Source of the DNA: Carpediemonas membranifera BICM
Taxonomy: Eukaryota > Protista > Fornicata
DNA length: 64,000 nucleotides
Assembly: GCA_019828565.1 (NCBI GenBank)
Contig: JAHDYR010000029.1
Coordinates: 115,509-179,508 of the forward strand
Direction: 5' to 3'
Part shown: in pieces, positions 1,325 to 55,628 of the stretch
Position numbering within the stretch: the stretch's first letter is position 1
Layout of the letters: every line of letters begins with the position of its first letter
Notes under the pieces: model-generated
The model's database searches: none
Seen by the model: the letters and a program-made list of their open reading frames with translations, nothing else
Told to the model about the DNA's origin: nothing
Program-made: the position numbers and the translations under genes

Positions 1325-1528
1325 ATAGTTTACTCACCCATGCTTTGAATGCCCACGATTTACCGCTCGTCCGCCTGACTGGCGCGGACACCGGCCTGCG
1401 TGACCGGTAGTGCAGTCAGCGCGCGTAGGATGTGAGTGGACGCTGTCGTTGCCCGCAGCGCCTCAGTCCAGTGCCGGCCCAGACAAATTCACACGGTTGA
1501 AGCTGCGTTTAATCTTTCCGGGCGGCGC

Positions 1529-1843
1529 TCAGGCGCTCTTGGCCTTCTCGACGAGCTGGCGGATGGCGGCCTCGTTGGCGCCGACGACCTCACCGATCAT
1601 CTGGCCGGCCTTGAAGGCCTTGAACGTGGGCATCGCGCGGACGCCTGCGAGGCTGGCAGCCCCTTGGTTCTGGTCGACGTCAACCTTCACGCAGGTGACG
1701 TTTGGGTTCTCCTCGGCGATCTTGATGAAGCGAGGGCCGATCATCTTGCACGGTGGGCACCAAGTGGCGAAGAAGTCGACGACTACGGGCGCGTCGCCGT
1801 TGATAAGCTGCTGGAATTCCTCAAGGGTTTCGATAACCTTCAT
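1529..1843 (-). CDS. Thioredoxin (WCPPC active site), 104 aa
   Basis: VVVDFFATWCPPCK...KVDVD...MPTF thioredoxin signature. Confidence 0.96.
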   Translation of the reverse strand: MKVIETLEEFQQLINGDAPVVVDFFATWCPPCKMIGPRFIKIAEENPNVTCVKVDVDQNQGAASLAGVRAMPTFKAFKAGQMIGEVVGANEAAIRQLVEKAKSA

Positions 1844-1983
1844 GTTGTGTTCGTTTGTGGACTGGCCGGATCACGGCTGCTGCTGTGGCATTGCCGTGGG
1901 TATTGCCAGAAAAGACCAGAATCGATGCCGGCGAAGCTGCCGCAGTCGCTGCCGCGGCATGACATAGAACGCAACTACTGCAC

Positions 1984-2572
1984 ATGAACACTGTCCCCGT
2001 TATCTCCAAGCCCGCTCCCGCCTTCGAGGCCACCGCTGTGATGCCCGACGGCTCCTTCCAGAAGTTCAGCCTCGCTGAGCAGAAGGGCAAGTACTTTGTC
2101 CTCGTCTTCTACCCCATGGACTTCACCTTCGTATGCCCCACCGAGATCATCGCCTTCTCCGAGGCCGCTGCCGAGTTCCGCAAGCTCGGCGCCGAGATCG
2201 CCGTCGTTTCCACCGACAGCGAGTTCGTCCACCTCGCCTGGCGCAACACCCCGCGCTCCGAGGGCGGCCTCGGTGAGCTGGCCATCCCCATGATCGCCGA
2301 CACCAACCACGAGATCTCGAAGCAGTACGGCGTGCTCATCCCCGAGATGGGCGTCGCCTTCCGCGGCCTCTTCATCATCGACGACAAGGGCATCCTCCGC
2401 CAGATCACCGTCAACGATCTGCCCGTCGGCCGCGACGTCGCCGAGACCAAGCGCCTCCTCCAGGCCTTCCAGTTCACCGACAAAGTACGGCGAGGTGTGC
2501 CCCGCTGGCTGGCACCCCGGCGACGACACCATCAACCCCGAGGACAAGAACGCCTACTTTAGCAAGCACTAA
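1984..2572 (+). CDS. Typical 2-Cys peroxiredoxin, copy 2, +1 A at 2482-2484 (probable sequencing error)
   Basis: Identical to the intact copies apart from caaagtac vs caagtac. Confidence 0.87.
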
Positions 2573-2776
2573 ATAGTTTACTCACCCATGCTTTGAATGC
2601 CCACGATTTACCGCTCGTCCGCCTGACTGGCGCGGACACCGGCCTGCGTGACCGGTAGTGCAGTCAGCGCGCGTAGGATGTGAGTGGACGCTGTCGTTGC
2701 CCGCAGCGCCCCAGTCCAGTGCCGGCCCAGACAAATTCACACGGTTGAAGCTGCGTTTAATCTTTCCGGGCGGCGC

Positions 2777-3091
2777 TCAGGCGCTCTTGGCCTTCTCGAC
2801 GAGCTGGCGGATGGCGGCCTCGTTGGCGCCGACGACCTCACCGATCATCTGGCCGGCCTTGAAGGCCTTGAACGTGGGCATCGCGCGGACGCCTGCGAGG
2901 CTGGCAGCCCCTTGGTTCTGGTCGACGTCAACCTTCACGCAGGTGACGTTTGGGTTCTCCTCGGCGATCTTGATGAAGCGAGGGCCGATCATCTTGCACG
3001 GTGGGCACCAAGTGGCGAAGAAGTCGACGACTACGGGCGCGTCGCCGTTGATAAGCTGCTGGAATTCCTCAAGGGTTTCGATAACCTTCAT
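2777..3091 (-). CDS. Thioredoxin (WCPPC)
   Basis: Intact 104-aa copy. Confidence 0.96.
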   Translation of the reverse strand: MKVIETLEEFQQLINGDAPVVVDFFATWCPPCKMIGPRFIKIAEENPNVTCVKVDVDQNQGAASLAGVRAMPTFKAFKAGQMIGEVVGANEAAIRQLVEKAKSA

Positions 3092-3231
3092 GTTGTGTTC
3101 GTTTGTGGACTGGCCGGATCACGGCTGCTGCTGTGGCATTGCCGTGGGTATTGCCAGAAAAGACCAGAATCGATGCCGGCGAAGCTGCCGCAGTCGCTGC
3201 CGCGGCATGACATAGAACGCAACTACTGCAC

Positions 3232-3819
3232 ATGAACACTGTCCCCGTTATCTCCAAGCCCGCTCCCGCCTTCGAGGCCACCGCTGTGATGCCCGACGGC
3301 TCCTTCCAGAAGTTCAGCCTCGCTGAGCAGAAGGGCAAGTACTTTGTCCTCGTCTTCTACCCCATGGACTTCACCTTCGTATGCCCCACCGAGATCATCG
3401 CCTTCTCCGAGGCCGCTGCCGAGTTCCGCAAGCTCGGCGCCGAGATCGCCGTCGTTTCCACCGACAGCGAGTTCGTCCACCTCGCCTGGCGCAACACCCC
3501 GCGCTCCGAGGGCGGCCTCGGTGAGCTGGCCATCCCCATGATCGCCGACACCAACCACGAGATCTCGAAGCAGTACGGCGTGCTCATCCCCGAGATGGGC
3601 GTCGCCTTCCGCGGCCTCTTCATCATCGACGACAAGGGCATCCTCCGCCAGATCACCGTCAACGATCTGCCCGTCGGCCGCGACGTCGCCGAGACCAAGC
3701 GCCTCCTCCAGGCCTTCCAGTTCACCGACAAGTACGGCGAGGTGTGCCCCGCTGGCTGGCACCCCGGCGACGACACCATCAACCCCGAGGACAAGAACGC
3801 CTACTTTAGCAAGCACTAA
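3232..3819 (+). CDS. Typical 2-Cys peroxiredoxin (Prx1/AhpC-TSA family), 195 aa
   Basis: [13 protein letters not shown], GGLG, EVCP and C-terminal YF motifs. Confidence 0.97.
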
Positions 3820-4024
3820 ATAGTTTACTCACCCATGCTTTGAATGCCCACGATTTACCGCTCGTCCGCCTGACTGGCGCGGACACCGGCCTGCGTGACC
3901 GGTAGTGCAGTCAGCGCGCGTAGGATGTGAGTGGACGCTGTCGTTGCCCGCAGCGCCCCAGTCCAGTGCCGGCCCAGACAAATTCACACGGTTGAAGCTG
4001 CGTTTAATCTTTTCCGGGCGGCGC

Positions 4025-4339
4025 TCAGGCGCTCTTGGCCTTCTCGACGAGCTGGCGGATGGCGGCCTCGTTGGCGCCGACGACCTCACCGATCATCTGG
4101 CCGGCCTTGAAGGCCTTGAACGTGGGCATCGCGCGGACGCCTGCGAGGCTGGCAGCCCCTTGGTTCTGGTCGACGTCAACCTTCACGCAGGTGACGTTTG
4201 GGTTCTCCTCGGCGATCTTGATGAAGCGAGGGCCGATCATCTTGCACGGTGGGCACCAAGTGGCGAAGAAGTCGACGACTACGGGCGCGTCGCCGTTGAT
4301 AAGCTGCTGGAATTCCTCAAGGGTTTCGATAACCTTCAT
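4025..4339 (-). CDS. Thioredoxin (WCPPC)
   Basis: Intact 104-aa copy. Confidence 0.96.
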   Translation of the reverse strand: MKVIETLEEFQQLINGDAPVVVDFFATWCPPCKMIGPRFIKIAEENPNVTCVKVDVDQNQGAASLAGVRAMPTFKAFKAGQMIGEVVGANEAAIRQLVEKAKSA

Positions 4340-4479
4340 GTTGTGTTCGTTTGTGGACTGGCCGGATCACGGCTGCTGCTGTGGCATTGCCGTGGGTATT
4401 GCCAGAAAAGACCAGAATCGATGCCGGCGAAGCTGCCGCAGTCGCTGCCGCGGCATGACATAGAACGCAACTACTGCAC

Positions 4480-5067
4480 ATGAACACTGTCCCCGTTATC
4501 TCCAAGCCCGCTCCCGCCTTCGAGGCCACCGCTGTGATGCCCGACGGCTCCTTCCAGAAGTTCAGCCTCGCTGAGCAGAAGGGCAAGTACTTTGTCCTCG
4601 TCTTCTACCCCATGGACTTCACCTTCGTATGCCCCACCGAGATCATCGCCTTCTCCGAGGCCGCTGCCGAGTTCCGCAAGCTCGGCGCCGAGATCGCCGT
4701 CGTTTCCACCGACAGCGAGTTCGTCCACCTCGCCTGGCGCAACACCCCGCGCTCCGAGGGCGGCCTCGGTGAGCTGGCCATCCCCATGATCGCCGACACC
4801 AACCACGAGATCTCGAAGCAGTACGGCGTGCTCATCCCCGAGATGGGCGTCGCCTTCCGCGGCCTCTTCATCATCGACGACAAGGGCATCCTCCGCCAGA
4901 TCACCGTCAACGATCTGCCCGTCGGCCGCGACGTCGCCGAGACCAAGCGCCTCCTCCAGGCCTTCCAGTTCACCGACAAGTACGGCGAGGTGTGCCCCGC
5001 TGGCTGGCACCCCGGCGACGACACCATCAACCCCGAGGACAAGAACGCCTACTTTAGCAAGCACTAA
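4480..5067 (+). CDS. Typical 2-Cys peroxiredoxin
   Basis: Intact 195-aa copy. Confidence 0.97.
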
Positions 5068-5272
5068 ATAGTTTACTCACCCATGCTTTGAATGCCCACG
5101 ATTTACCGCTCGTCCGCCTGACTGGCGCGGACACCGGCCTGCGTGACCGGTAGTGCAGTCAGCGCGCGTAGGATGTGAGTGGACGCTGTCGTTGCCCGCA
5201 GCGCCCCAGTCCAGTGCCGGCCCAGACAAATTCACACGGTTGAAGCTGCGTTTAATCTTTTCCGGGCGGCGC

Positions 5273-5587
5273 TCAGGCGCTCTTGGCCTTCTCGACGAGC
5301 TGGCGGATGGCGGCCTCGTTGGCGCCGACGACCTCACCGATCATCTGGCCGGCCTTGAAGGCCTTGAACGTGGGCATCGCGCGGACGCCTGCGAGGCTGG
5401 CAGCCCCTTGGTTCTGGTCGACGTCAACCTTCACGCAGGTGACGTTTGGGTTCTCCTCGGCGATCTTGATGAAGCGAGGGCCGATCATCTTGCACGGTGG
5501 GCACCAAGTGGCGAAGAAGTCGACGACTACGGGCGCGTCGCCGTTGATAAGCTGCTGGAATTCCTCAAGGGTTTCGATAACCTTCAT
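5273..5587 (-). CDS. Thioredoxin (WCPPC)
   Basis: Intact 104-aa copy. Confidence 0.96.
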   Translation of the reverse strand: MKVIETLEEFQQLINGDAPVVVDFFATWCPPCKMIGPRFIKIAEENPNVTCVKVDVDQNQGAASLAGVRAMPTFKAFKAGQMIGEVVGANEAAIRQLVEKAKSA

Positions 5588-5727
5588 GTTGTGTTCGTTT
5601 GTGGACTGGCCGGATCACGGCTGCTGCTGTGGCATTGCCGTGGGTATTGCCAGAAAAGACCAGAATCGATGCCGGCGAAGCTGCCGCAGTCGCTGCCGCG
5701 GCATGACATAGAACGCAACTACTGCAC

Positions 5728-6315
5728 ATGAACACTGTCCCCGTTATCTCCAAGCCCGCTCCCGCCTTCGAGGCCACCGCTGTGATGCCCGACGGCTCCT
5801 TCCAGAAGTTCAGCCTCGCTGAGCAGAAGGGCAAGTACTTTGTCCTCGTCTTCTACCCCATGGACTTCACCTTCGTATGCCCCACCGAGATCATCGCCTT
5901 CTCCGAGGCCGCTGCCGAGTTCCGCAAGCTCGGCGCCGAGATCGCCGTCGTTTCCACCGACAGCGAGTTCGTCCACCTCGCCTGGCGCAACACCCCGCGC
6001 TCCGAGGGCGGCCTCGGTGAGCTGGCCATCCCCATGATCGCCGACACCAACCACGAGATCTCGAAGCAGTACGGCGTGCTCATCCCCGAGATGGGCGTCG
6101 CCTTCCGCGGCCTCTTCATCATCGACGACAAGGGCATCCTCCGCCAGATCACCGTCAACGATCTGCCCGTCGGCCGCGACGTCGCCGAGACCAAGCGCCT
6201 CCTCCAGGCCTTCCAGTTCACCGACAAGTACGGCGAGGTGTGCCCCGCTGGCTGGCACCCCGGCGACGACACCATCAACCCCGAGGACAAGAACGCCTAC
6301 TTTAGCAAGCACTAA
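5728..6315 (+). CDS. Typical 2-Cys peroxiredoxin
   Basis: Intact 195-aa copy. Confidence 0.97.
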
Positions 6316-6520
6316 ATAGTTTACTCACCCATGCTTTGAATGCCCACGATTTACCGCTCGTCCGCCTGACTGGCGCGGACACCGGCCTGCGTGACCGGTA
6401 GTGCAGTCAGCGCGCGTAGGATGTGAGTGGACGCTGTCGTTGCCCGCAGCGCCTCAGTCCAGTGCCGGCCCAGACAAATTCACACGGTTGAAGCTGCGTT
6501 TAATCTTTTCCGGGCGGCGC

Positions 6521-6835
6521 TCAGGCGCTCTTGGCCTTCTCGACGAGCTGGCGGATGGCGGCCTCGTTGGCGCCGACGACCTCACCGATCATCTGGCCGG
6601 CCTTGAAGGCCTTGAACGTGGGCATCGCGCGGACGCCTGCGAGGCTGGCAGCCCCTTGGTTCTGGTCGACGTCAACCTTCACGCAGGTGACGTTTGGGTT
6701 CTCCTCGGCGATCTTGATGAAGCGAGGGCCGATCATCTTGCACGGTGGGCACCAAGTGGCGAAGAAGTCGACGACTACGGGCGCGTCGCCGTTGATAAGC
6801 TGCTGGAATTCCTCAAGGGTTTCGATAACCTTCAT
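6521..6835 (-). CDS. Thioredoxin (WCPPC)
   Basis: Intact 104-aa copy. Confidence 0.96.
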   Translation of the reverse strand: MKVIETLEEFQQLINGDAPVVVDFFATWCPPCKMIGPRFIKIAEENPNVTCVKVDVDQNQGAASLAGVRAMPTFKAFKAGQMIGEVVGANEAAIRQLVEKAKSA

Positions 6836-6975
6836 GTTGTGTTCGTTTGTGGACTGGCCGGATCACGGCTGCTGCTGTGGCATTGCCGTGGGTATTGCCA
6901 GAAAAGACCAGAATCGATGCCGGCGAAGCTGCCGCAGTCGCTGCCGCGGCATGACATAGAACGCAACTACTGCAC

Positions 6976-7563
6976 ATGAACACTGTCCCCGTTATCTCCA
7001 AGCCCGCTCCCGCCTTCGAGGCCACCGCTGTGATGCCCGACGGCTCCTTCCAGAAGTTCAGCCTCGCTGAGCAGAAGGGCAAGTACTTTGTCCTCGTCTT
7101 CTACCCCATGGACTTCACCTTCGTATGCCCCACCGAGATCATCGCCTTCTCCGAGGCCGCTGCCGAGTTCCGCAAGCTCGGCGCCGAGATCGCCGTCGTT
7201 TCCACCGACAGCGAGTTCGTCCACCTCGCCTGGCGCAACACCCCGCGCTCCGAGGGCGGCCTCGGTGAGCTGGCCATCCCCATGATCGCCGACACCAACC
7301 ACGAGATCTCGAAGCAGTACGGCGTGCTCATCCCCGAGATGGGCGTCGCCTTCCGCGGCCTCTTCATCATCGACGACAAGGGCATCCTCCGCCAGATCAC
7401 CGTCAACGATCTGCCCGTCGGCCGCGACGTCGCCGAGACCAAGCGCCTCCTCCAGGCCTTCCAGTTCACCGACAAGTACGGCGAGGTGTGCCCCGCTGGC
7501 TGGCACCCCGGCGACGACACCATCAACCCCGAGGACAAGAACGCCTACTTTAGCAAGCACTAA
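6976..7563 (+). CDS. Typical 2-Cys peroxiredoxin (last copy of the array)
   Basis: Intact 195-aa copy. Confidence 0.97.
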
Positions 7564-7656
7564 ATAGTTTACTTACCCATGCTTCCGTTCACACCACCCA
7601 GCCGGACATGGCTGACACGGCAGCATTTACATTGCTATGTACACTCCCTACACACC

Positions 7657-12328: not shown

Positions 12329-12536
12329 TGTTGCGCAGTATAAACACATTTTTCAAACCTCCAAGACAGGGCCTGAAAGGAACGATCAAAGTGCCAAACT
12401 GTACAACATCATCCGTCCGTAGACGAATGTTGGCGGTTAGCCAATTGATGATCCCTACCGACTTAAGACGTGAGTAGGAGGGAGACAGGGCAGTGTTGCG
12501 CAGTATAAACACATTGTTCGACCCTTCAATAGCACA
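12329..12536 (+). mobile_element. Putative non-autonomous relative of the Fanzor element: duplicated element-end motif
   Basis: 12506-12536 is 31/31 identical to the reverse complement of 40422-40452. TGTTGCGCAGTATAAACACATT occurs at 12329-12350 and 12494-12515. Confidence 0.55.
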
Positions 12537-37877: not shown

Positions 37878-38338
37878 AGCTGTAGCAGCAGCAGTGAGAG
37901 GAGCGAACTTCGGTGAATTTCTTCGACTCCAAATGACTCCATCAAGCGTTCAAGTTAAAGATCCACAGTCGATCCTCATCATCGGATCATCGATCATTAA
38001 TCGAGTCAGATTCAGAGATCAGAGCTCCCACCCCGTACATGTGCCCCGCCGGGAGGCGAACGCTGGTGGCTTTCGAGGCGACCCTATAGGCTGCTGACCG
38101 ATAGAATGAGGGGCATTTGAAGGGGTGCGACTGTCCAAATTAGCGTGCCAATCGGACCGTACTCCAAAAACTAATCACGCTATCCCCACCCCAAGCACAG
38201 CCATACCATGCTGGACGGGACATGCGACCTGGAGGCTGTCTCCGCTCGTCCTGCTGTCACACGCTCGGCCTCAGCGATGCGGCGCTATCCTGCTCGAAAA
38301 TTTTCGAGGATTTCACCAGTTCAGCTTCTGTCGCTGCG

Positions 38339-40255
38339 ATGGACAAAAGTGGCAAACAAGGACAGGCTGATCTGTTTCACATATACACAGTGGAAGGCGA
38401 TACATTCATTCGACAGGAGTCGTTCGAGCGCGCCGTCGCAGCATACTCCAAAGCCCTCGAGCTGAAGGAGGAGGACAGACATTGCTTGCTGAATCGGTCC
38501 CGTTGCTATGTGCGTCTTGGACAGTATGACTTAGCGCTCACCGATGCGAAGAAGTGCGCCGGTGCCGAGGACCACCAGGCCACGTTCCAGCAGGCTGAGG
38601 TCCTCTACGCCAGCGGCGACTTCGAATACGCGCTTGTTCACTACCACCGAGCCCACCGCATCCGTCCAGACATCCTCGAGTATCAGCTGGGCATCAGGAA
38701 GGCGGAGTCAGCCATCGCCCGTGCTATCAGTCTCGGCGACGACACCGGGCGGCCAGGTACGTCTGTGCAGTCGCCCATGTTCATACGGTCGCCCATGGGC
38801 ATCCCTGTGGCATCGAACCCCGCCACCCCCATGCCTACCACACCAAAGGCCGGGGCTGACGGTAGACCTAAACCCTCGAGGAAGCTGCTCGGAGACCTCT
38901 ACGACGACCAGGAGTTCCTGAAGAAGTTGCAGGGAGAGCCGGCGTTCCGTAATAATGCGACGATCGCTAAGGTCATCTCTACGGGCCTCGAATTCATCGA
39001 CTCCCGGACCGAGTTCTGGCGTCAGCAGCAATCGCCCACTGCCCACAGGAGAAGCAAGTCCGCACTCCGATTCTCCCGACCAGGCACCGCGGGCCGGCCC
39101 TCTACCGCGGGCGGCCGACTTGGCTCGACAGGACGGGCGACGATCGGTGGGCGGGGCAACAAGCTCACCGTTAGGACGGGGCAGTTCAGGCCTCAGACAT
39201 CGATGCCAGGGTCGAGACCCGCAGCGCCAAAGACCAGGCCTGGGACGAGCGGGAGTCGACCCAACGCCAGGTCACGACGGTACAAGCAGACAGGGCCCCG
39301 GCATGTCAGCATGGGCACGACGCTGGGAGGGACGCTCGGCAGCAGCATGAGGCCGCCCACAGCCCCGGCAACGACAGAGTCCAGGCGTGTGGGCACACCA
39401 AGACGGACGCGGCAGGATCCTCAGACGGAGGTTGAAGAGAAGAGGAAATACATGCGGGCGACGCACTATGTTTCGAAGGTCATGACGAACATCGAGGAAG
39501 CCCTGAAGACAGGGGCACCCGACCTTGCCCTGCAGTTCGGGAAGAGTCTGCTGTCCCGGCTGTCGACGCTAGAGGTGCCCGACCACGGCATGGTCACGGC
39601 AGACGCCCACTCGGTCATGGGGACCATTTACATGGCACTCGACCGGCCCACGCCCGCGGTTATACACCATAAGAAGGATCTGGACATCAGCCTCGAGCAC
39701 GGCGACCTGGCGGGACATGTGAGGGCACTGAGGCAGCTGGCCAACGCGTATATCCGTCTGGACGACGGGGATATGGCGATTGCTGTCGCCACGAAGCTTA
39801 TTGACGGTGACCAGCTCAGCCCGCCGTCCTACGTCCTTGGGGAAGCTCTTCTCCAGCGCGGTAGGGCGCGGTATGAGCAGAAGCACTACGAGCAGGCCGC
39901 TGAGGACGCCGAGCACGCTTGGGCCGTCTTGAACGAACCTTCGCTGTCCAGGGAGCCCGGCACGGACGCCGTAGATACAGCCATCTTCGGATATGACGGC
40001 GACCTCGCCTCATCCCGGGCCGAGCTCCAGCTGGACGGGCTGTGTCTTCACGGCCGCTGTTTGATGGCCGTGGGGAAGGACGACGAGGCCGCCCAGAGGC
40101 TGCAGCTGTGTCTTGAGCTGGCACGGGGTAACAGGGACCGCACTGCCGAGGCGGCCGCCCTCACAAACCTCAGCGTGATCGCACTGAGTCAGGGCGACGT
40201 TCAGGAGGGGAAGCGGCTCCAGCGGGAGGCGGTGTCTGTCAGCAAAACCCGCTGA
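38339..40255 (+). CDS. TTC25: Outer dynein arm docking complex subunit 4 (TTC25-like TPR protein)
   Basis: N-terminal TPRs (GDFEYALVHYHRAHRIRP); RKLLGDLYDDQEFLKKL...GLEFIDSRTEFWRQQ signature; C-terminal TPRs. Confidence 0.82.
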   Translation: MDKSGKQGQADLFHIYTVEGDTFIRQESFERAVAAYSKALELKEEDRHCLLNRSRCYVRLGQYDLALTDAKKCAGAEDHQATFQQAEVLYASGDFEYALVHYHRAHRIRPDILEYQLGIRKAESAIARAISLGDDTGRPGTSVQSPMFIRSPMGIPVASNPATPMPTTPKAGADGRPKPSRKLLGDLYDDQEFLKKLQGEPAFRNNATIAKVISTGLEFIDSRTEFWRQQQSPTAHRRSKSALRFSRPGTAGRPSTAGGRLGSTGRATIGGRGNKLTVRTGQFRPQTSMPGSRPAAPKTRPGTSGSRPNARSRRYKQTGPRHVSMGTTLGGTLGSSMRPPTAPATTESRRVGTPRRTRQDPQTEVEEKRKYMRATHYVSKVMTNIEEALKTGAPDLALQFGKSLLSRLSTLEVPDHGMVTADAHSVMGTIYMALDRPTPAVIHHKKDLDISLEHGDLAGHVRALRQLANAYIRLDDGDMAIAVATKLIDGDQLSPPSYVLGEALLQRGRARYEQKHYEQAAEDAEHAWAVLNEPSLSREPGTDAVDTAIFGYDGDLASSRAELQLDGLCLHGRCLMAVGKDDEAAQRLQLCLELARGNRDRTAEAAALTNLSVIALSQGDVQEGKRLQREAVSVSKTR

Positions 40256-40421: not shown

Positions 40422-40666
40422 TGTGCTATTGAAGGGTCGAACAATGTGTTTACTGAGGAGGTTTAGACCCGTGGTGGTGTAAATGGTCCAAACTATAGGG
40501 GATTTGAGTGCAACAACACATGGGTGCCGCGCAGGATTAGAATTGTTGAGTCCAAAACACACAGTGATCCAAGCAGCATCAGGATCGCATTGTGGTTCAT
40601 CATACTCTATCAATCGTGCGCTGCATATCACGCGCGCTGCAGCGCGTGCTTGCTCAACTTAGCAAG
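40422..40666 (-). ncRNA. Candidate Fanzor omega-RNA scaffold region (guide would be the flank immediately below 40422)
   Basis: Position just downstream of the Fanzor stop codon. Stem-loops at 40649-40666, 40629-40648, 40566-40586 and 40462-40492. Conserved terminal 31 nt. Confidence 0.45.
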
Positions 40667-41338
40667 TTAATGATAGTGAGGATGAGCACCTCTCTGGGAG
40701 TCGTAGTGGAAAGGAGATTGCTCTATCTGATCTGAAGTTGCATCGAAGGTGCACCAAAGGATGTTCTCGCTGGCGCTCTTATCTCGGTGAGAGAGATTGA
40801 GAAGTATGTCTCTCTGCTCGGGATGCCGACGTAGCCGTTCAACGCGCCATGGAGCTCCCTCGCACGCGGGATTCTGGCAGAGCATGGTGCGGTGTGTGTG
40901 CACCACACGTCTGAAGTGTGCTTTGCAGTATGGGCACACGATGGAAGTGCGGAATTCGGAGACCATCGTGACAGTCACGACGACGTTGTGCCGGAGCATT
41001 ATGCCAGGAAGTGCTCGAGCAAAGTGGCGGTACGGAGCACAGGAGGGAGTGCCGGCAGAACCGAACAGTGCAGCCCCATACGCGACTTCGAGGTGAATGG
41101 GCTCCGGGGGGCGCCCGCCGAGATCATCCAGGAGTTGACGTCCAGCCCGGGCGAAGTGCTTCAGGCGCAGACAGTGATTGGCAAAAGTCTCACGGCGGAA
41201 ACACTTTCTCGTCCCCTCGTTGATGATCTGAACGATGTTCTCATGGACAGACCTAATCGACTGTTTGAGAGCCTCTAGACTTGTCGTTTTGAACGATGCT
41301 GCGCTCATATTCACGAGGGGGTGGCAGTGTAGCCACAC
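40667..41338 (-). pseudogene. Fanzor1/TnpB-like RNA-guided endonuclease, C-terminal half (RuvC-II, Zn finger, RuvC-III); RuvC-I missing
   Basis: SFKTTSLE...FRRETF...VAYGAALFG...APYRHFARAL...VSEFRTSIVCPYC...CQNPAC...HRDKSASENI. In-frame TAA at 41339-41341. A shifted upstream frame (RLEVFTG...YTIRR...SG) extends to ~41448 but has no DPG motif. Confidence 0.8.
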
Positions 41339-41490
41339 TTAGCGAGAACGCCAGATACACTCTGCCCGTCTGGGCGGCGGATCGTGTAGCCGTCCAGCCT
41401 ACAGCCTAAGCCTTCTTCGCATGAACCCCCGGTAAACACCTCTAAACGCTACAACATGAGAAACCATAAGCTGCGAAATATTGATTGAGC

Positions 41491-43093
41491 ATGTCCAGTG
41501 GAAACGTGCTCAAGTCAGAGGCTTCTGAAGAAAGGGGAGAGTTTTCCCACCAATCAACGTTCATTGGCGCTATTGCTATTGCCGATATGCTCAAGACGAC
41601 GCTCGGGCCCCTTGGCATGGACAAAATTCTCCAAAGCATGAGTGGTGTTGATTCCCTGACCATCACGAACGATGGAGCGACTATCCTGAGCTCTCTTTCT
41701 GTCGATAACCCCGCTGCGAGAGTTCTGATCAACCTCTCCACCACACAGGATCAAGAGATTGGTGACGGCACCACGAGCGTTGTCGTCTTCGCTGGTGAGC
41801 TCCTGCGCATGGCCGAGCAGCTCATTGCCCGCGGTATCCCCGTTCCCGTCATCCGCGAGGGCTACCAGCGTGCCTCTGCGGCCGCCCTTGCTGCGTTGAC
41901 TGAAAGCGCCAATGCCAACGACGGGAGCGAGGAGGCGTTCAGAGAGGAGCTCTTCCGCATCGCCATGACGACTTTGTCGAGCAAGATCCTCAACGTCGAC
42001 AAGAAGTTCTTCGCCAACATGGCCGTGGACGCCGTTCTTCGTCTGGGCGGGTCGACGAACCTCGCCAACATCCAGATCATCAAGAAGCTCGGCAAGACGA
42101 TGGAAGACTCCTTCCTCGACGAGGGCTTCATCCTTGACAAGCAGATCTCCGTCGGCTGCCCCGTAGACCTCAAGGCCGAGGACCCGGAGCACCCTCTGCG
42201 AGTCCTCGTCGCCAACACCTCTATGGACGCCGACAAGGTCAAGATCTTCGGCTCTAAGGCCAAGGTCTCGGGCGCCACCGAGCTGGCCGCCATCGAGTCC
42301 GAAGAGCGTCGCCGCATGCGCGACAAGTGCGCCCGCATCATGAAACACGATATCAACTGCTTCGTCAACCGCCAGCTTGTCTACAACCAGGCCGAGGAGG
42401 AGTTCGCGGCGAAGGGCGTGATGTGCATCGAGCACGCCGACTTCGACGGCATCGAGCGTCTCTCGCTCGTTCTCGACGCCGACATTCTCTCGACGTTCGA
42501 CACTCCCGAGAAGGCCAGGGTTGGCACGTGCCAGCGCATCCACGAGATCATGATCGGCGAGGACAAGCTCATCCGGTTCGCGGGCGTCCCCAAGAACCAG
42601 GCCTGTACCATCGTCCTCCGCGGCGCCTCCAAGCACCTCCTCGACGAGGCTGAGCGTTCCCTGCACGACGCCCTCGCCGTTCTCTCGCAGACGGTGAAGG
42701 ACAGGCACACATGCCTCGGCGCGGGCAGCTCCGAGATGCTCATGTCGCTCGCCGTCTCCCCGCGAGGCCGACGAGCGCGAGGACCTGACCCAGGTTGCGA
42801 TGAGGTCCTTCTCTCAGGCCCTCGAGAACATCTGCTTCATCCTCTGCGAGAACGCCGGGCTTGACGCCAACACCATCGTCGCGAAGCTGCACGCTGCCCA
42901 CGCTGGCGGGCACAAGACTGCTGGCATCGACATTGTGAACGGCTGCGTCGGTGATGCCCGCGAGCTTGGCATCGTCGAGGCCCTGAAGTCGAAGCGCCAG
43001 ATGGTCATGTCCGCGACGGAGGCGGCGTCCCAGCTTCTCAAGGTCGACAACATCATCCGGTGCGCGCCCCGCGAGCGGCAGCAGGGCCAGTAA
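41491..43093 (+). CDS. CCT2: T-complex protein 1 subunit beta; apparent +1 frameshift in C run 42758-42761 (probable sequencing error)
   Basis: EERGEFSHQSTFIGAIAIADMLKTTLGPLGMDKIL, TNDGATIL, GDGTTSV, DKVKIFG, C-terminus VDNIIRCAPRER. Confidence 0.95.
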
Positions 43094-47828: not shown

Positions 47829-50800
47829 ATGGTGGAAGTGCTGGACGCAGTGGTTATCAGTGGATCCATAACAATACTACTTCTGATTCTAGTACTTGCA
47901 TTCTTTTTAACCTGTAGTTTAGTGTTCCTAGTCATGTTCTGTAGCATTCATTTCCTTATCCGCAGAAAGAAGCGGAAGATCCTTAATCCGAACAGATCCG
48001 CGCAACAAGCGCAATCAGCTGATGTTCAACAAACCGCAGGGCTTGCGGAGAGTCCTGTTTCTCAATCCCAGCCCTCAGAGTACGCCGAGGAGTACCCCCC
48101 TGTCGAGGACATGGCCGAGCTGCCTGGAGTCGTGGCGGATGTCGCAGCAGCACCGGTAATCATGCATCCCATGAGTTACAGAGGAGATTTCACACCACCG
48201 GAGTCACCCACCCCCGCCGAGCCCGTCAAGAAGGCCGTGCCAAAGCGCGATGAGGCTGACGATATTCGTCCCGGCGTGGTTGTTTCCGATGCTGTGGCTC
48301 AACCCCATCCCGAAGAGATCAAGCCAGCGTCGCCCGGCCCCGCTGCGAAGCGGTCCGTTAGGTTTGGCGACGAGCTTGTTGCTGAGACCGTAACTGAAGA
48401 CGCTGTGGCTCAACCCCATCCCGAAGAGATCAAGCCAGCGTCGCCCGGCCCCGCTGCGAAGCAACCCGTCAGATTTGGCGATGAGCTTGTCGCCGAGGTC
48501 GTTACCGACAATGCCATGCCCCGCGGCCCTCGTCTTGACGAGATCAGACCCAGCTCGCCCAACCCTGCTGCCAAGCGTCCTGTCAACTTTGGCGACGAGC
48601 TTGTTGCTGAGGCGGTCACCGACGATCATATGCCGGTTGACGACGATGTCGACGAGATCCGCGCCTCGCCAAGCCCTGCACACCCGATGAGCTTTGTTGA
48701 CGACCTCGAGACTGCTGCCGCTGACTCTCGCTCTGCCGTGAAGTCTGCCGTCCAGATGGATGGCTCGCATGATGTTGGCGCCATCCGCCCCGGCGTGGTT
48801 GTTTCCGATGCTGTGTCCCACGCTCAGCCCGGCGAGATCAGACCCGACTCACCCGGCCCCGCTGCGAAGCAACCCGTCAGATTTGGCGATGAGCTTGTCG
48901 CCGAGGTCGTTACCGACAATGCCATGCCCCGCGGCCCTCGTCTTGACGAGATCAGACCCAGCTCGCCCAACCCTGCTGCCAAGAGCGACTCGGCCGAGTT
49001 CAGCTCCGCAGTCAGGTCGACTGTCCAGACTGCTCAGATGGACGGCATGCGCGACATGGGCGCCATCCGCCCCGGCGTGGTTGTTTCCGACGCTGTGTCC
49101 CACGCTCAGCCCGGCGAGATCAGACCCGACTCACCCGGCCCCGCTGCGAAGCAACCCGTCAGATTTGGCGATGAGCTTGTCGCCGAGGTCGTTACCGACA
49201 ATGCCATGCCCCGCGGCCCTCGTCTTGACGAGATCAGACCCAGCTCGCCCAACCCTGCTGCCAAGAGCGACTCGGCCGAGTTCAGCTCCGCAGTCAGGTC
49301 GACTGTCCAGACTGCTCAGATGGACGGCATGCGCGACATGGGCGCCATCCGCCCCGGCGTGGTTGTTTCCGACGCTGTGTCCCACGCTCAGCCCGGCGAG
49401 ATCAGACCCGACTCACCCGGCCCCGCTGCGAAGCAACCCGTCAGATTTGGCGATGAGCTTGTCGCCGAGGTCGTTACCGACAATGCCATGCCCCGCGGCC
49501 CTCGTCTTGACGAGATCAGACCCAGCTCGCCCAACCCTGCTGCCAAGAGCGACTCGGCCGAGTTCAGCTCCGCAGTCAGGTCGACTGTCCAGACTGCTCA
49601 GATGGACGGCATGCGCGACATGGGCGCCATCCGCCCCGGCGTGGTTGTTTCCGACGCTGTGTCCCACGCTCAGCCCGGCGAGATCAGACCCGACTCACCC
49701 GGCCCCGCTGCGAAGCAACCCGTCAGATTTGGCGATGAGCTTGTCGCCGAGGTCGTTACCGACAATGCCATGCCCCGCGGCCCTCGTCTTGACGAGATCA
49801 GACCCAGCTCGCCCAACCCTGCTGCCAAGAGCGACTCGGCCGAGTTCAGCTCCGCAGTCAGGTCGACTGTCCAGACTGCTCAGATGGACGGCATGCGCGA
49901 CATGGGCGCCATCCGCCCCGGCGTGGTTGTTTCCGACGCTGTGTCCCACGCTCAGCCCGGCGAGATCAGACCCGACTCACCCGGCCCCGCTGCGAAGCAA
50001 CCCGTCAGATTTGGCGATGAGCTTGTCGCCGAGGTCGTTACCGACAATGCCATGCCCCGCGGCCCTCGTCTTGACGAGATCAGACCCAGCTCGCCCAACC
50101 CTGCTGCCAAGAGCGACTCGGCCGAGTTCAGCTCCGCAGTCAGGTCGACTGTCCAGACTGCTCAGATGGACGGCATGCGCGACATGGGCGCCATCCGCCC
50201 CGGCGTGGTTGTTTCCGACGCTGTGTCCCACGCTCAGCCCGGCGAGATCAGACCCGACTCACCCGGCCCCGCTGCGAAGCAACCCGTCAGATTTGGCGAT
50301 GAGCTTGTCGCCGAGGTCGTTACCGACAATGCCATGCCCCGCGGCCCTCGTCTTGACGAGATCAGACCCAGCTCGCCCAACCCTGCTGCCAAGAGCGACT
50401 CGGCCGAGTTCAGCTCCGCAGTCAGGTCGACTGTCCAGACTGCTCAGATGGACGGCATGCGCGACATGGGCGCCATCCGCCCCGGCGTGGTTGTTTCCGA
50501 CGCTGTGTCCCACGCTCAGCCCGGCGAGATCAGACCCGACTCACCCGGCCCCGCTGCGAAGCAACCCGTCAGATTTGGCGATGAGCTTGTCGCCGAGGTC
50601 GTTACCGACAATGCCATGCCCCGCGGCCCTCGTCTTGACGAGATCAGACCCAGCTCGCCCAACCCTGCTGCCAAGCGTCCTGTCAACTTTGGCGACGAGC
50701 TTGTTGCTGAGGCGGTCACCGACGATCATATGCCGGTTGACGACGATGTCGACGAGATCCGCGCCTCGCCAAGCCCTGCACACCCGATGAGCTTTGTTGA

Positions 50801-53800
50801 CGACCTCGAGACTGCTGCCGCTGACTCTCGCTCTGCCGTGAAGTCTGCCGTCCAGATGGATGGCTCGCATGATGTTGGCGCCATCCGCCCCGGCGTGGTT
50901 GTTTCCGATGCTGTGTCCCACGCTCAGCCCGGCGAGATCAGACCCGACTCACCCGGCCCCGCTGCGAAGCAACCCGTCAGATTTGGCGATGAGCTTGTCG
51001 CCGAGGTCGTTACCGACAATGCCATGCCCCGCGGCCCTCGTCTTGACGAGATCAGACCCAGCTCGCCCAACCCTGCTGCCAAGAGCGACTCGGCCGAGTT
51101 CAGCTCCGCAGTCAGGTCGACTGTCCAGACTGCTCAGATGGACGGCATGCGCGACATGGGCGCCATCCGCCCCGGCGTGGTTGTTTCCGACGCTGTGTCC
51201 CACGCTCAGCCCGGCGAGATCAGACCCGACTCACCCGGCCCCGCTGCGAAGCAACCCGTCAGATTTGGCGATGAGCTTGTCGCCGAGGTCGTTACCGACA
51301 ATGCCATGCCCCGCGGCCCTCGTCTTGACGAGATCAGACCCAGCTCGCCCAACCCTGCTGCCAAGAGCGACTCGGCCGAGTTCAGCTCCGCAGTCAGGTC
51401 GACTGTCCAGACTGCTCAGATGGACGGCATGCGCGACATGGGCGCCATCCGCCCCGGCGTGGTTGTTTCCGACGCTGTGTCCCACGCTCAGCCCGGCGAG
51501 ATCAGACCCGACTCACCCGGCCCCGCTGCGAAGCAACCCGTCAGATTTGGCGATGAGCTTGTCGCCGAGGTCGTTACCGACAATGCCATGCCCCGCGGCC
51601 CTCGTCTTGACGAGATCAGACCCAGCTCGCCCAACCCTGCTGCCAAGAGCGACTCGGCCGAGTTCAGCTCCGCAGTCAGGTCGACTGTCCAGACTGCTCA
51701 GATGGACGGCATGCGCGACATGGGCGCCATCCGCCCCGGCGTGGTTGTTTCCGACGCTGTGTCCCACGCTCAGCCCGGCGAGATCAGACCCGACTCACCC
51801 GGCCCCGCTGCGAAGCAACCCGTCAGATTTGGCGATGAGCTTGTCGCCGAGGTCGTTACCGACAATGCCATGCCCCGCGGCCCTCGTCTTGACGAGATCA
51901 GACCCAGCTCGCCCAACCCTGCTGCCAAGAGCGACTCGGCCGAGTTCAGCTCCGCAGTCAGGTCGACTGTCCAGACTGCTCAGATGGACGGCATGCGCGA
52001 CATGGGCGCCATCCGCCCCGGCGTGGTTGTTTCCGACGCTGTGTCCCACGCTCAGCCCGGCGAGATCAGACCCGACTCACCCGGCCCCGCTGCGAAGCAA
52101 CCCGTCAGATTTGGCGATGAGCTTGTCGCCGAGGTCGTTACCGACAATGCCATGCCCCGCGGCCCTCGTCTTGACGAGATCAGACCCAGCTCGCCCAACC
52201 CTGCTGCCAAGAGCGACTCGGCCGAGTTCAGCTCCGCAGTCAGGTCGACTGTCCAGACTGCTCAGATGGACGGCATGCGCGACATGGGCGCCATCCGCCC
52301 CGGCGTGGTTGTTTCCGACGCTGTGTCCCACGCTCAGCCCGGCGAGATCAGACCCGACTCACCCGGCCCCGCTGCGAAGCAACCCGTCAGATTTGGCGAT
52401 GAGCTTGTCGCCGAGGTCGTTACCGACAATGCCATGCCCCGCGGCCCTCGTCTTGACGAGATCAGACCCAGCTCGCCCAACCCTGCTGCCAAGAGCGACT
52501 CGGCCGAGTTCAGCTCCGCAGTCAGGTCGACTGTCCAGACTGCTCAGATGGACGGCATGCGCGACATGGGCGCCATCCGCCCCGGCGTGGTTGTTTCCGA
52601 CGCTGTGTCCCACGCTCAGCCCGGCGAGATCAGACCCGACTCACCCGGCCCCGCTGCGAAGCAACCCGTCAGATTTGGCGATGAGCTTGTCGCCGAGGTC
52701 GTTACCGACAATGCCATGCCCCGCGGCCCTCGTCTTGACGAGATCAGACCCAGCTCGCCCAACCCTGCTGCCAAGAGCGACTCGGCCGAGTTCAGCTCCG
52801 CAGTCAGGTCGACTGTCCAGACTGCTCAGATGGACGGCATGCGCGACATGGGCGCCATCCGCCCCGGCGTGGTTGTTTCCGATGCTGTGTCCCACGCTCA
52901 GCCTGGCGAGATCAGACCCGACTCACCGGCCCTTGCTACCAAGGTCGACTCTGACGTCCCCTCGGTGCGGCCGACAGTGCAAGCGGCCCAGATGGACGGG
53001 ACCAGACCCGTCAAGGCTATTCGTCCTGGCGGTGTCGTGGTGACCAGCGCAGTCTCAGACTCGCCCAAGCTTGATGAGATCAGACCCGACTCGCCCAGTC
53101 CCGCCGAGAAGCAGCCCGTCAGCTTTGGCAGCGAGGTTGTTCCCGGAGTGATCGAGACAGACGAGATGATGCCAACGTCCCGACTCGACGAGATCAGGCC
53201 CGCCTCCCCCAAGGAAACCGGGCCACCCGCCCTCGACTTCGGCACCGCTGTCCGCCCGACCGTGGCCGTTATCATGGACGCCAAGGGCGATGAGGAGCCG
53301 ACCAAGCCCACTGTCTTCGGGGAGCCCCGCACTATTGGCGAGACTGTCGCCCGCCCGACGAGCTGGACGACTGCCAGCATTCCCCGTCCAGCGCCGACCC
53401 GCACCCAGCCCGAGCCTGCTAATGTCATCGTCCGGCCAGCCCGCGACTCCATGGCGTCGTCGGCATCGCAGTCCGCCTTTACCGGGCACTCGGCCTTTAT
53501 CCAGATCGGACGGAAACCCGCCCGTGACATTGCGGAGATGGGGACCGTGGATGTCGAGCCAGTCGAGCCGACCCGCGTCGGAAGCCCGCGCGAGTCCGAC
53601 GTCGACGACGAGCAGGAGGACGCCTCCCCCGCCCTCTCGCACCAGTACACGAACGACGAGGCATTCATCTCCAAGCCGCGGCTCAGCTCGGAAGCCATGT
53701 CGCCCCGCGCGTCCCCGGAGCTCAGCATGCGGCCTGTGCTCGCCACGGATGTCCAACCCGCCTGGATGGAGGCGCCCCGCCCCAGTCAGCAGGCCCTGAA

Positions 53801-55628
53801 GGTCAGCCAGACAACCGTCCCTCGGGGCGAGGCTGCGGAGGCTAAGCCCATCAGGAACACGATCCGGGTGAGCTCGTCCGACATCTCCCCCACTGCCCGG
53901 GCCAGACCCATTGACCGGGCCGTGCGGGTGTCCCAGCCTGTCCTCGACATGACCGTTTCCAGCGCCCCTGCCCCGATGGCGAAGTCTGTCCGGGTTTCCC
54001 AGGCCGTGTTTGACCTGGCAGCCCCGCCCGCCGAGGACCTCAGTGGTCCTATCGGCCACTCCGTCCGGGTGTCGCAGCCCGTGCTCGACATCGAGACCCA
54101 GCCCGGCGAGGCGATCAGTGGGCCCATCGGCCACTCGGTCCGCGTCTCCCAGCCTGTCCTTGACGGTCCCCTCCCTATTGCCTCGGCCGACATCCCCATG
54201 AGCTCTCCAGTCGAGCTCGCCCAGTCGATGCCGCCATCCACCTCGGTCTCCCGGATCCACACGCCTGGTCCCGCTGCCGTTGTCAGTGCAGTGAATGGTC
54301 GGCACCCAGCCCTCGTCGGCGGGCCCAGGACCATCCGGAACCCGAGTGTGTCGGCCTCGATGCGCGGTGCCAGCGTCCTCGCAGACAGGCCGACCCGCAT
54401 GTACACGGGGCAGCCGGTGAAGGCATCGACCATGGCGAGCCCCCGCCCCCTGCGGTCCTTGCAGGGCGCACATGGGCTTGTGGACGCCCGCATACCGAGT
54501 GTGCCCGACCTGCACGCTCCGGCCGCCGACCTCGAGGCACCGAGAGATCTCGAGGCCACCGCCGAGTCGACCCTGCCTGAGGCGATCGCCATTGACCGCT
54601 CCGAGGACTCCGAGCCCGAGCCCCTCATCCCGGAGTCCGACAGTTCCCCCCAGGAGCCCGACTTCAGCGTCACGGTCACCCAGTCGATCGACATGCCGCA
54701 CCCCGACCTCGTTGTCCTGCAGCCACGGGTCCCTAGGGCCCGTAAACTGCTCGAAATGGAGGGCCATCCCCGCCATGAGATCCGCGTGCCGTCCCCCACC
54801 AGGCCCAGGCCACTCCAGTCGGCCATGAAGCAGCGCGACGAGAGTGAGATCACGATCCCCAACCCGCCCCGCCGTGTACGGATCCAGACGACGAAGCTGC
54901 CCAGCGCGCGGGTGGAGATCGAGCAGCACAAGATGCCCGAGGGCATGGATCGCCCCCGCACCGCCCCAGGCCTCAACGCCTTCGTCGCCCCTGCCTCCCG
55001 GGACGCACAGATGGTAGCCATGGCAGTGCACAGCGAGAACATCCGGTCCCAACCGCCGTCGGTCTGGCCGTCGCGTGCGGTCACCCCGATGTCGACTCGG
55101 GCCGAGTCGGTCGTTGCGAGGGCACCCGAGTACTACCCGACCGAGGAGCTGCCTCTAGACGAGCCCGACGACCTCCAGGACCGCTGGGCGGCCATGAAGG
55201 CGTCGTCGGCCGCCGCGACGCCCCAGAGCCAGGCCCCCGCGACACCCGCCCCGCCGAGCCCCGAGGCTGATGAGGCTGTGTCCCGCCCGATGTCGACCGA
55301 ACCCACCGAGATTCTGGTCCCGTCACTGTCGGCCTCTCTTAAGGGCCCCAATGCCAAGGAGGAGCCCACGCCGACGATCCCCGAGCCAGAGGAGGCCGAT
55401 GCTGACGACGAGAGCGAGCCCGTTGCTCTCCCGCCGTCTCCACCGATGACTGAGGTCAAGCAGGTCTCGACCCACGATACCGTCAAGGGCCTCCTCAGGA
55501 AGCCCGCGCCCCGTGGCCGCCGCCTGACCGAGCGCCAGTGGAGCACACCCAGTGGCGTTGCCCGCATGCCGTCGATGCCCAACAGCGTGCTCGACCGTGT
55601 CCGGGGCATCCTGGGCTCCCCCATGTGA
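47829..55628 (+). CDS. Giant (~2600 aa) membrane-anchored, disordered Pro/Ser-rich repeat protein
   Basis: N-terminal hydrophobic anchor followed by RRKKRK; frame stays open through all repeats; TGTAAA after the stop. Confidence 0.85.
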   Translation: MVEVLDAVVISGSITILLLILVLAFFLTCSLVFLVMFCSIHFLIRRKKRKILNPNRSAQQAQSADVQQTAGLAESPVSQSQPSEYAEEYPPVEDMAELPGVVADVAAAPVIMHPMSYRGDFTPPESPTPAEPVKKAVPKRDEADDIRPGVVVSDAVAQPHPEEIKPASPGPAAKRSVRFGDELVAETVTEDAVAQPHPEEIKPASPGPAAKQPVRFGDELVAEVVTDNAMPRGPRLDEIRPSSPNPAAKRPVNFGDELVAEAVTDDHMPVDDDVDEIRASPSPAHPMSFVDDLETAAADSRSAVKSAVQMDGSHDVGAIRPGVVVSDAVSHAQPGEIRPDSPGPAAKQPVRFGDELVAEVVTDNAMPRGPRLDEIRPSSPNPAAKSDSAEFSSAVRSTVQTAQMDGMRDMGAIRPGVVVSDAVSHAQPGEIRPDSPGPAAKQPVRFGDELVAEVVTDNAMPRGPRLDEIRPSSPNPAAKSDSAEFSSAVRSTVQTAQMDGMRDMGAIRPGVVVSDAVSHAQPGEIRPDSPGPAAKQPVRFGDELVAEVVTDNAMPRGPRLDEIRPSSPNPAAKSDSAEFSSAVRSTVQTAQMDGMRDMGAIRPGVVVSDAVSHAQPGEIRPDSPGPAAKQPVRFGDELVAEVVTDNAMPRGPRLDEIRPSSPNPAAKSDSAEFSSAVRSTVQTAQMDGMRDMGAIRPGVVVSDAVSHAQPGEIRPDSPGPAAKQPVRFGDELVAEVVTDNAMPRGPRLDEIRPSSPNPAAKSDSAEFSSAVRSTVQTAQMDGMRDMGAIRPGVVVSDAVSHAQPGEIRPDSPGPAAKQPVRFGDELVAEVVTDNAMPRGPRLDEIRPSSPNPAAKSDSAEFSSAVRSTVQTAQMDGMRDMGAIRPGVVVSDAVSHAQPGEIRPDSPGPAAKQPVRFGDELVAEVVTDNAMPRGPRLDEIRPSSPNPAAKRPVNFGDELVAEAVTDDHMPVDDDVDEIRASPSPAHPMSFVDDLETAAADSRSAVKSAVQMDGSHDVGAIRPGVVVSDAVSHAQPGEIRPDSPGPAAKQPVRFGDELVAEVVTDNAMPRGPRLDEIRPSSPNPAAKSDSAEFSSAVRSTVQTAQMDGMRDMGAIRPGVVVSDAVSHAQPGEIRPDSPGPAAKQPVRFGDELVAEVVTDNAMPRGPRLDEIRPSSPNPAAKSDSAEFSSAVRSTVQTAQMDGMRDMGAIRPGVVVSDAVSHAQPGEIRPDSPGPAAKQPVRFGDELVAEVVTDNAMPRGPRLDEIRPSSPNPAAKSDSAEFSSAVRSTVQTAQMDGMRDMGAIRPGVVVSDAVSHAQPGEIRPDSPGPAAKQPVRFGDELVAEVVTDNAMPRGPRLDEIRPSSPNPAAKSDSAEFSSAVRSTVQTAQMDGMRDMGAIRPGVVVSDAVSHAQPGEIRPDSPGPAAKQPVRFGDELVAEVVTDNAMPRGPRLDEIRPSSPNPAAKSDSAEFSSAVRSTVQTAQMDGMRDMGAIRPGVVVSDAVSHAQPGEIRPDSPGPAAKQPVRFGDELVAEVVTDNAMPRGPRLDEIRPSSPNPAAKSDSAEFSSAVRSTVQTAQMDGMRDMGAIRPGVVVSDAVSHAQPGEIRPDSPGPAAKQPVRFGDELVAEVVTDNAMPRGPRLDEIRPSSPNPAAKSDSAEFSSAVRSTVQTAQMDGMRDMGAIRPGVVVSDAVSHAQPGEIRPDSPALATKVDSDVPSVRPTVQAAQMDGTRPVKAIRPGGVVVTSAVSDSPKLDEIRPDSPSPAEKQPVSFGSEVVPGVIETDEMMPTSRLDEIRPASPKETGPPALDFGTAVRPTVAVIMDAKGDEEPTKPTVFGEPRTIGETVARPTSWTTASIPRPAPTRTQPEPANVIVRPARDSMASSASQSAFTGHSAFIQIGRKPARDIAEMGTVDVEPVEPTRVGSPRESDVDDEQEDASPALSHQYTNDEAFISKPRLSSEAMSPRASPELSMRPVLATDVQPAWMEAPRPSQQALKVSQTTVPRGEAAEAKPIRNTIRVSSSDISPTARARPIDRAVRVSQPVLDMTVSSAPAPMAKSVRVSQAVFDLAAPPAEDLSGPIGHSVRVSQPVLDIETQPGEAISGPIGHSVRVSQPVLDGPLPIASADIPMSSPVELAQSMPPSTSVSRIHTPGPAAVVSAVNGRHPALVGGPRTIRNPSVSASMRGASVLADRPTRMYTGQPVKASTMASPRPLRSLQGAHGLVDARIPSVPDLHAPAADLEAPRDLEATAESTLPEAIAIDRSEDSEPEPLIPESDSSPQEPDFSVTVTQSIDMPHPDLVVLQPRVPRARKLLEMEGHPRHEIRVPSPTRPRPLQSAMKQRDESEITIPNPPRRVRIQTTKLPSARVEIEQHKMPEGMDRPRTAPGLNAFVAPASRDAQMVAMAVHSENIRSQPPSVWPSRAVTPMSTRAESVVARAPEYYPTEELPLDEPDDLQDRWAAMKASSAAATPQSQAPATPAPPSPEADEAVSRPMSTEPTEILVPSLSASLKGPNAKEEPTPTIPEPEEADADDESEPVALPPSPPMTEVKQVSTHDTVKGLLRKPAPRGRRLTERQWSTPSGVARMPSMPNSVLDRVRGILGSPM
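48260..53210 (+). repeat. Coding tandem repeat: 282-bp (94-aa) units organised in a 2100-bp higher-order repeat (6 x 282 + 408-bp variant)
   Basis: Shadow ORFs recur every 282 bp (48849, 49131...). The variant unit recurs at 48760 and 50860. Confidence 0.97.
53795..54165 (+). repeat. Degenerate ~20-aa coding repeat (S/A)VRVSQPVLD, 4 clear and 2 weak copies
   Basis: RAVRVSQPVLD, KSVRVSQAVFD and HSVRVSQPVLD x2 in the translation. Confidence 0.75.

Follow-up and report, generated by a model that had tools for sequence, protein, structure and literature searches.

The window analyzed here, a stretch of 64,000 nucleotides from the fornicate Carpediemonas membranifera (the host group had been guessed correctly from the letters alone), holds a minus-strand open reading frame (ORF) between a TPR gene (38222-40255) and CCT2 (from 41491). 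The ORF runs from a GTG at 41338 to 40667, encodes 223 aa, and contains the motifs VAYGAALF, VSEFRTS, CPYC...CQNPAC, and HRDKSASENI, so that every motif pointed out in the original prediction of a Fanzor/TnpB-like nuclease, including the zinc finger, can be read in it; DPG is absent. Chance can be set aside as the origin of this ORF, because the genome it comes from (24.2 Mb, 69 contigs) yielded at least 150 protein matches, many of them 92-99% identical, with one sharp 3' end in the family. Two groups near 50% identity were also found. Judged by sequence, what remains in the window ORF is the 3' third of a Fanzor1-type gene.

The element had been assigned to 40422-41448, which mixes two insertions. 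The Fanzor insertion runs from 41453 to 40523 and is complete at 931 bp, with the 5-bp target-site duplication CATGT on both sides (minus strand; left copy 41454..41458, right copy 40518..40522, the latter a possible guide start). Since both ends and the duplication are present, a simple 5' truncation was rejected. The remaining segment, 40422..40515 on the minus strand, was likewise rejected as part of the element; it is an independent solo LTR from a 4.65-kb Ty3/Gypsy chromodomain retrotransposon, with 95% identity and no matching duplication. On the minus strand, a host target motif, GCAGCTTA (family consensus GCAGTTTA), lies at 41467..41474, 8 nt before the duplication and, on the plus strand, 16 nt upstream of the CCT2 ATG. 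The left terminus of the insertion (41441..41453, minus strand) is the U5-like end of an inner (3') LTR-like repeat, antisense, with the plus strand ending in CA. It is followed by a ~40-bp fragment of the 3' end of an RLE-type non-LTR retrotransposon (41402..41440, plus strand; a variant subfamily). This copy has lost the remainder of the inner repeat together with the purine tract. The Fanzor remnant occupies 40667..41398 on the minus strand, with the RuvC-II Glu at 40957-40955, the C4 zinc finger, the RuvC-III Asp at 40783-40781, and the stop codon at 40669-40667. The outer (5') 41-bp LTR-like repeat (40523..40563, plus strand), which is the fixed right end of the family, begins here with G rather than T.

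Truncation at RuvC-I had been attributed to an in-frame stop at 41339-41341. The loss of RuvC-I and DPG stands and its cause does not: RuvC-I is absent because an internal deletion of ~1.6 kb joins the left end of the element to the ORF, with the junction 12 nt after the DPG codons, and sister copies run ...MGFDPGARSLGGYTIRR... directly into the sequence of the window ORF. At 41341-41339 the gene's own frame reads LDGYTIRRPDGQSVSGVLAKCGY; the TAA seen there is no nonsense mutation of it and belongs to a frame shifted by a 7-bp deletion between 41316 and 41315. With RuvC-I deleted and the frame shifted, the window copy is dead and cannot encode an active nuclease, in line with the earlier impression that it was probably inactive.

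Elsewhere in the window, the CCT2 gene (41491-43093) shows a frame change near 42770 (window 42700-42790), after which the C-terminus continues in another frame; the gene is essential, and a single-base error of the assembly is the probable cause. Six tandem copies of a peroxiredoxin-like gene (FVCPTE motif, recognized by eye) lie at ~500-7600 with a 1248-bp period, and 47829-55628 encodes a 2600-aa protein with near-perfect 282-bp (94-aa) tandem repeats.

A Fanzor1-type protein family

The family falls into three subfamilies (A, B, and C) that are 41-53% identical. Intact members elsewhere in the genome, which the original prediction had anticipated, do exist: full-length sisters were found, and one copy, on contig 18, has a 642-aa ORF. 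For these readings, overlapping pieces of single genomic copies were joined, with no consensus taken and no frame repaired. The RuvC-I motif MGFDPG, deleted in the window copy, is present in sisters of all three subfamilies, and the C4 zinc finger and the RuvC-III Asp are kept in all three as well. An alternative RuvC-II Glu (E-FRTSIV-C) stands six residues before the C4 finger and aligns with that of GtFz1. The combination of DPG with a Glu before the zinc finger is a Fanzor fingerprint found in < 1% of TnpB-family proteins, and the TDG of the WED domain is a mark of Fanzor1 (Yoon 2023, PMC10711439). TDG also occurs in all three subfamilies, as SVRTDGV in the residue 334 region of the 642-aa copy, and with these features in the sisters the Fanzor call holds.

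Profile searches gave weak scores. The window ORF alone matches the Pfam Cas12f1-like TNB at E 0.16 and Cas12f structures at E 1.7, and Pfam TNB matches are in the range E 0.04-0.16. A family profile searched against the PDB gave three matches at E < 10, two of them Cas12f and the third GtFz1 (E 0.46); in that weak GtFz1 match, TDG, DPG, and Glu line up. In the profile comparison proposed as a check, the matches to Fanzor or Cas12f structures are weak (E 0.14-0.46). In the ESM Atlas, the family clusters with eukaryotic and giant-virus TNB/DUF8286 proteins (feature score 0.97, TM 0.54-0.61). Our own AlphaFold models were poor (pLDDT 38 and 31), and Foldseek gave no match at E < 0.001 on such low-confidence models. 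No sequence relative outside the species was found among 5.8 billion proteins, among 1.84 billion representatives (searched with a single query, not a profile), or in viral contigs, and the family's own proteins are unnamed or misnamed in databases. The family adds a divergent lineage, from a metamonad, to Fanzor.

Most copies of the family are deleted or frameshifted, and the catalytic triad is intact in most of the copies scored. Across 21 copies, pN/pS is 0.37 for codon variants common to several copies versus 0.97 for single-copy variants (p 0.003 versus neutral), which we read as selection on propagating copies and decay after insertion. One locus (L005 / P0006, G000 C37) encodes a chimeric Fanzor in which a B N-terminal part and an A C-terminal part are joined in frame at the DPG; this chimera and the many internal deletions in the family fit template switching.

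Anatomy of the carrier element

The LTR-like carrier had gone unnoticed in the original prediction. The family element is ~2.4-2.6 kb long, carries the Fanzor gene in antisense, and ends in GCGCRGCACA in all copies. The same end occurs once more ~330 bp before the start codon, where a pyrimidine run follows it; the junction of repeat and run occurs 80 times exactly in subfamily A. On the opposite strand, the junction reads as a purine tract followed by a repeat beginning TG. The tract ends GAGGTAG/TGTG, as in another resident LTR family, and adjoins the inner repeat in subfamilies A, B, and C. At five places the inner repeat is uninterrupted, measuring 41 bp and ending in CA; the outer repeat is also 41 bp long, also ends in CA, and has its first 30 bp in common with the inner one. 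Perfect 5-bp duplications flank 15 elements within one locus each and 5 more across loci, and many solo repeats are flanked by a 5-bp duplication of their own. The two repeats of one element differ, by a fixed U5 difference and by U3 haplotypes that are unmatched in 5 of 8 elements and in the C18 copy. This is unlike canonical LTR replication, in which both LTRs are identical at insertion.

Subfamilies B and C have repeat-plus-purine-tract ends of their own; the B end is repeated upstream with a purine tract, and C ends in its own short repeat. The window contains a second insertion of this kind, a 208-bp ORF-less deletion derivative of subfamily C (12329..12536, minus strand), which has the layout of the Fanzor elements: two short repeats, a purine tract, the duplication TTCAA, and the target motif at a distance of 8 nt. 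At one end it has 31 bp in common with the U5 end of the Gypsy LTR. Full-length elements of subfamilies B and C, and four additional loci of Gypsy or solo-LTR type, lay outside the set of loci that were read.

Other carrier types were considered and rejected. Terminal inversion is limited to 4-5 bp (the complementary TGTG/CACA), and no linked transposase, for which the original prediction had proposed a search, lies in the 7 kb around a full-length copy, which removes a TIR DNA transposon; a Helitron was rejected since there are no such ends. By eye, no TGG-type primer-binding site follows the outer repeat, and no autonomous helper element with the same LTR was found in the genome. The LTR family with the same purine-tract end was rejected as the helper because its LTR differs. 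Two further LTR families of the form TGTG...CACA (L134-L139) have the purine tract GGGGAGGTAG. At two right ends (L002, L013), a short element starting GATTTATACATGT is inserted in the terminal repeat with a duplication of ~11 bp.

The inner repeat is usually interrupted. Approximately 47 of 52 exact left ends (~90% of inner repeats) run into the antisense 3' end of an RLE non-LTR retrotransposon, as against five empty 41-bp repeats. Every piece is truncated at a point of its own (39 to 475 bp and more) and is flanked by two TCTAAA; the pieces encode CCHC and restriction-like endonuclease motifs and an RxAD...DVT end. In one case, an RLE copy lies within a different LTR and is flanked by a TGTAAAC duplication of its own. 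No full-length copy of the left-end subfamily was found in the assembly; it is related (E 2e-10) to a full-length RT element of 1391 aa in the genome. That 1391-aa element (RT, CCHC, endonuclease; L096:787-4959, G000 C10) is present in ~15 copies that are 97-99% identical, has the 3' end CATAAA, and often lies inside or adjoining LTRs. The full-length RLE2 family was rejected as the source of the ends or the motif: neither is common to it, it ends CATAAA, and it makes no such duplication. The RLE pieces would represent either a site-specific element that targets the miniature LTR or the capture of a foreign minus-strand start.

In subfamilies A, B, and C, the end of the element is predicted to pair 45-100 nt upstream, close to the stop codon. 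The z-scores of this end-closing stem are -1.5 to -1.8 in A, -0.3 to -2.3 in B, and -2.6 to -4.9 in C, and are thus strong in C only. In the window copy, the candidate omega-RNA scaffold (40523..40666, minus strand) would form two hairpins and then a long stem in which the element end pairs with ~40625-40600, with a z of -1.8 that is not significant alone. Most of the element is covered by contigs from sequencing runs presumed to be RNA, with neither strand nor ends visible in them. Element termini and duplications become part of Fanzor1 scaffolds in known cases (Yoon 2023, PMC10711439). If the predicted folds hold, the guide scaffolds of this family would be apparently short (~50-110 nt).

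Target motif and the resident Ty3/Gypsy element

The motif GCA[GCT]WWTW occurs 6-8 nt before the duplication at 21 of 30 Fanzor-element left ends. Of the 31 right ends, 1 has it, and the background rate is 0.2% for each end. The resident Ty3/Gypsy element (4.65 kb; gag, protease, RT, integrase, chromodomain) has 5-bp duplications in 12/12 readable copies, and in 6 of 14 copies the same motif stands in the same place, at 5-8 nt (p ~1e-11). In three Gypsy copies the motif lies past the duplication, at 3 nt; Fanzor elements have a fixed orientation relative to the motif, and Gypsy copies do not. At two loci, a Gypsy copy is inserted between the motif and a pre-existing Fanzor-type end. Near gene starts, the motif is over-represented in non-coding DNA, and it is common in LTRs too, so that a host factor site would be its simplest reading. 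The terminal repeat of each subfamily holds a look-alike of the motif (GCGCAGTATA in C). Among the insertions compared, no conserved bases were seen beside the duplication and hence no TAM is visible, and guides derived from the flanks matched no other insertion site, which is a weak test. The right end of subfamily B itself contains the target-like motif GCACTCTA, with a subfamily A solo repeat inserted 7 nt later (L091, L129-L131). One Gypsy copy (L065/L072/L066, G000 C26) has two pol frameshifts, and its primer-site position reads GTAATTAC, not TGG.

Mode of movement and relation to known systems

We consider it probable that the Fanzor family travels in a non-autonomous LTR-type element that is inserted by the Gypsy integrase and mobilized in trans. 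This builds on what we take as established, namely the anatomy, the duplication length, the motif and spacing common with Gypsy, the same layout in three subfamilies, and selection. In the proposed course of events, an antisense transcript would be copied in trans by the Gypsy reverse transcriptase, and the Gypsy integrase would insert the copy beside a motif of promoter type. Since an element's two repeats differ from each other, its U5-like end was probably supplied by a different template; the RLE pieces may be site-specific insertions into the TCTAAA of the inner repeat or may be brought in with the foreign end. By analogy with known Fanzor1, the sense transcript would give both the nuclease and the omega-RNA, with the LTR end in the closing stem and the right flank as the guide. 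The likeliest benefit would be the cutting of empty alleles, after which homologous repair copies the element (non-restorative homing). This is the weakest step of the proposal, as no conserved TAM is visible beside the insertion. Metamonads are reported to lack NHEJ, and C. membranifera is probably haploid (PMC8516963).

The same TG...CA ends and 5-bp duplication could be produced by a cut-and-paste DNA element moved by an integrase-like DDE enzyme, either Ginger-like or the Gypsy integrase acting on excised DNA, since they mark the enzyme and not an RNA step. The LTR-like parts would then be inherited relics and the Fanzor would do ordinary restorative homing, which agrees with the view in PMC13565253 and accounts both for two repeats that are not homogenized and for a nuclease kept under selection. 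We regard this as unlikely: the purine tract is retained against the inner repeat in all three subfamilies, solo repeats carry duplications of their own, the inverted termini do not extend beyond 4-5 bp, the left-end sequence varies in a way that a transposase would not tolerate, and there is no transposase in or near a full-length copy. The RLE fragments at ~47/52 left ends, each cut differently, and the fixed orientation to the motif suggest another route, in which the RLE machinery inserts by target-primed reverse transcription, copying its own RNA and then jumping to the Fanzor nucleic acid. U6-L1 chimeras are analogous products of the template-jump type. However, the fragment sits between two TCTAAA within the repeat and empty repeats exist, one RLE copy lies in another LTR with the TGTAAAC duplication, Gypsy copies without an RLE piece have the same duplication length and motif, and the related full-length RLE ends CATAAA without such a duplication; we find this route less probable still.

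Two further readings concern the role of the nuclease, and both seem to us very improbable. One is that the Fanzor gene was captured once by an LTR element and is now functionless cargo. The many deleted or frameshifted copies and the lack of a visible TAM would fit, but three subfamilies at 41-53% identity retain all catalytic motifs and a predicted end-closing stem, and shared variants are under purifying selection. The other, which we rate marginally lower, is that the Fanzor carries a fixed internal guide and directs the integrase to the motif, which would make it a eukaryotic counterpart of CAST. The motif look-alike in the terminal repeat of each subfamily, which would make the omega-RNA end complementary to the motif, and the fixed distance and orientation speak for it. 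Against it, most copies have an intact catalytic triad, the frequent occurrence of the motif directly before host genes and in LTRs is what a host factor site would show, Gypsy inserts on both sides of the motif, and the guides derived from flanks found no match at other insertion sites, weak as that test is.

Like Fanzor1 proteins such as GtFz1 and SpuFz1 (PMC3627910, PMC10711439, PMC10432273), those of C. membranifera are ~640 aa long with TDG, DPG, the alternative Glu, the C4 finger, and the RuvC-III Asp. The gene likewise lies at the fixed 3' end of a multi-copy element with ORF-less ghost copies and a predicted end-closed RNA scaffold. Unlike Fanzor1 elsewhere, the family lacks a carrier of TIR/DDE, Helitron, or recombinase type, shows nothing like a TAM directly next to its insertions, and has no relative outside the species in the sequence searches. 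The new part is the carrier. The carriers given by Bao and Jurka 2013 are only DNA-type or unclassified (PMC3627910), Jiang et al. list Gypsy, ERV, and LINE only as neighbors within 10 kb of Fanzor (PMC10312701, PMC10530073), Ty3 in Fanzor loci was taken as secondary insertions by Saito 2023 (PMC10432273), and according to a 2026 review an LTR-retrotransposon-type carrier has never been shown for Fanzor. Our literature search found no publication on Fanzor in Carpediemonas and none showing an LTR-type Fanzor carrier.

Non-autonomous LTR retroelements (TRIM/LARD) and the resident Ty3/Gypsy offer the closer comparison, with short TG...CA direct repeats, a purine tract, a 5-bp duplication, and solo repeats. 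With Gypsy, the elements also have in common the target motif and, in subfamily C, the shared 31 bp of end. They differ in that the two repeats of an element are not the same, in carrying an antisense nuclease gene as cargo, and in an inner repeat that an RLE fragment usually breaks; nor was a primer site seen by eye, and the resident Gypsy is without one too. The Fanzor1-bearing Helitron2 elements CRe-1,2,3 of Chlamydomonas (PMC3627910) also have a fixed 3' end, a variable 5' side with extra sequence captured there, and insertion beside a motif; their duplications vary from 7 to 19 bp and their ends are of Helitron type, whereas the elements described here have TG...CA repeats, a purine tract, and a duplication of constant length, 5 bp. 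The left-end RLE fragments resemble site-specific elements of the CRE/R2 group in being 5'-truncated and in having CCHC, RxAD...DVT, and a 6-7 bp duplication. They depart from that group in their apparent target, a miniature LTR.

A broader reading, for which we see about even chances, is that Fanzor is a long-lived, selected cargo of RNA-replicating miniature LTR elements, in which the LTR end also closes the guide RNA as its stem and the LTR itself is the specific target of an RLE retrotransposon. If true, selected cargo of this kind would run counter to the expectation in the literature that elements which do not excise have nothing to gain from Fanzor. The link to Gypsy lies here at the level of the element, in a cultured protist with intact genes under selection, and the use of Fanzor to its carrier therefore becomes directly testable outside the excision-repair model.
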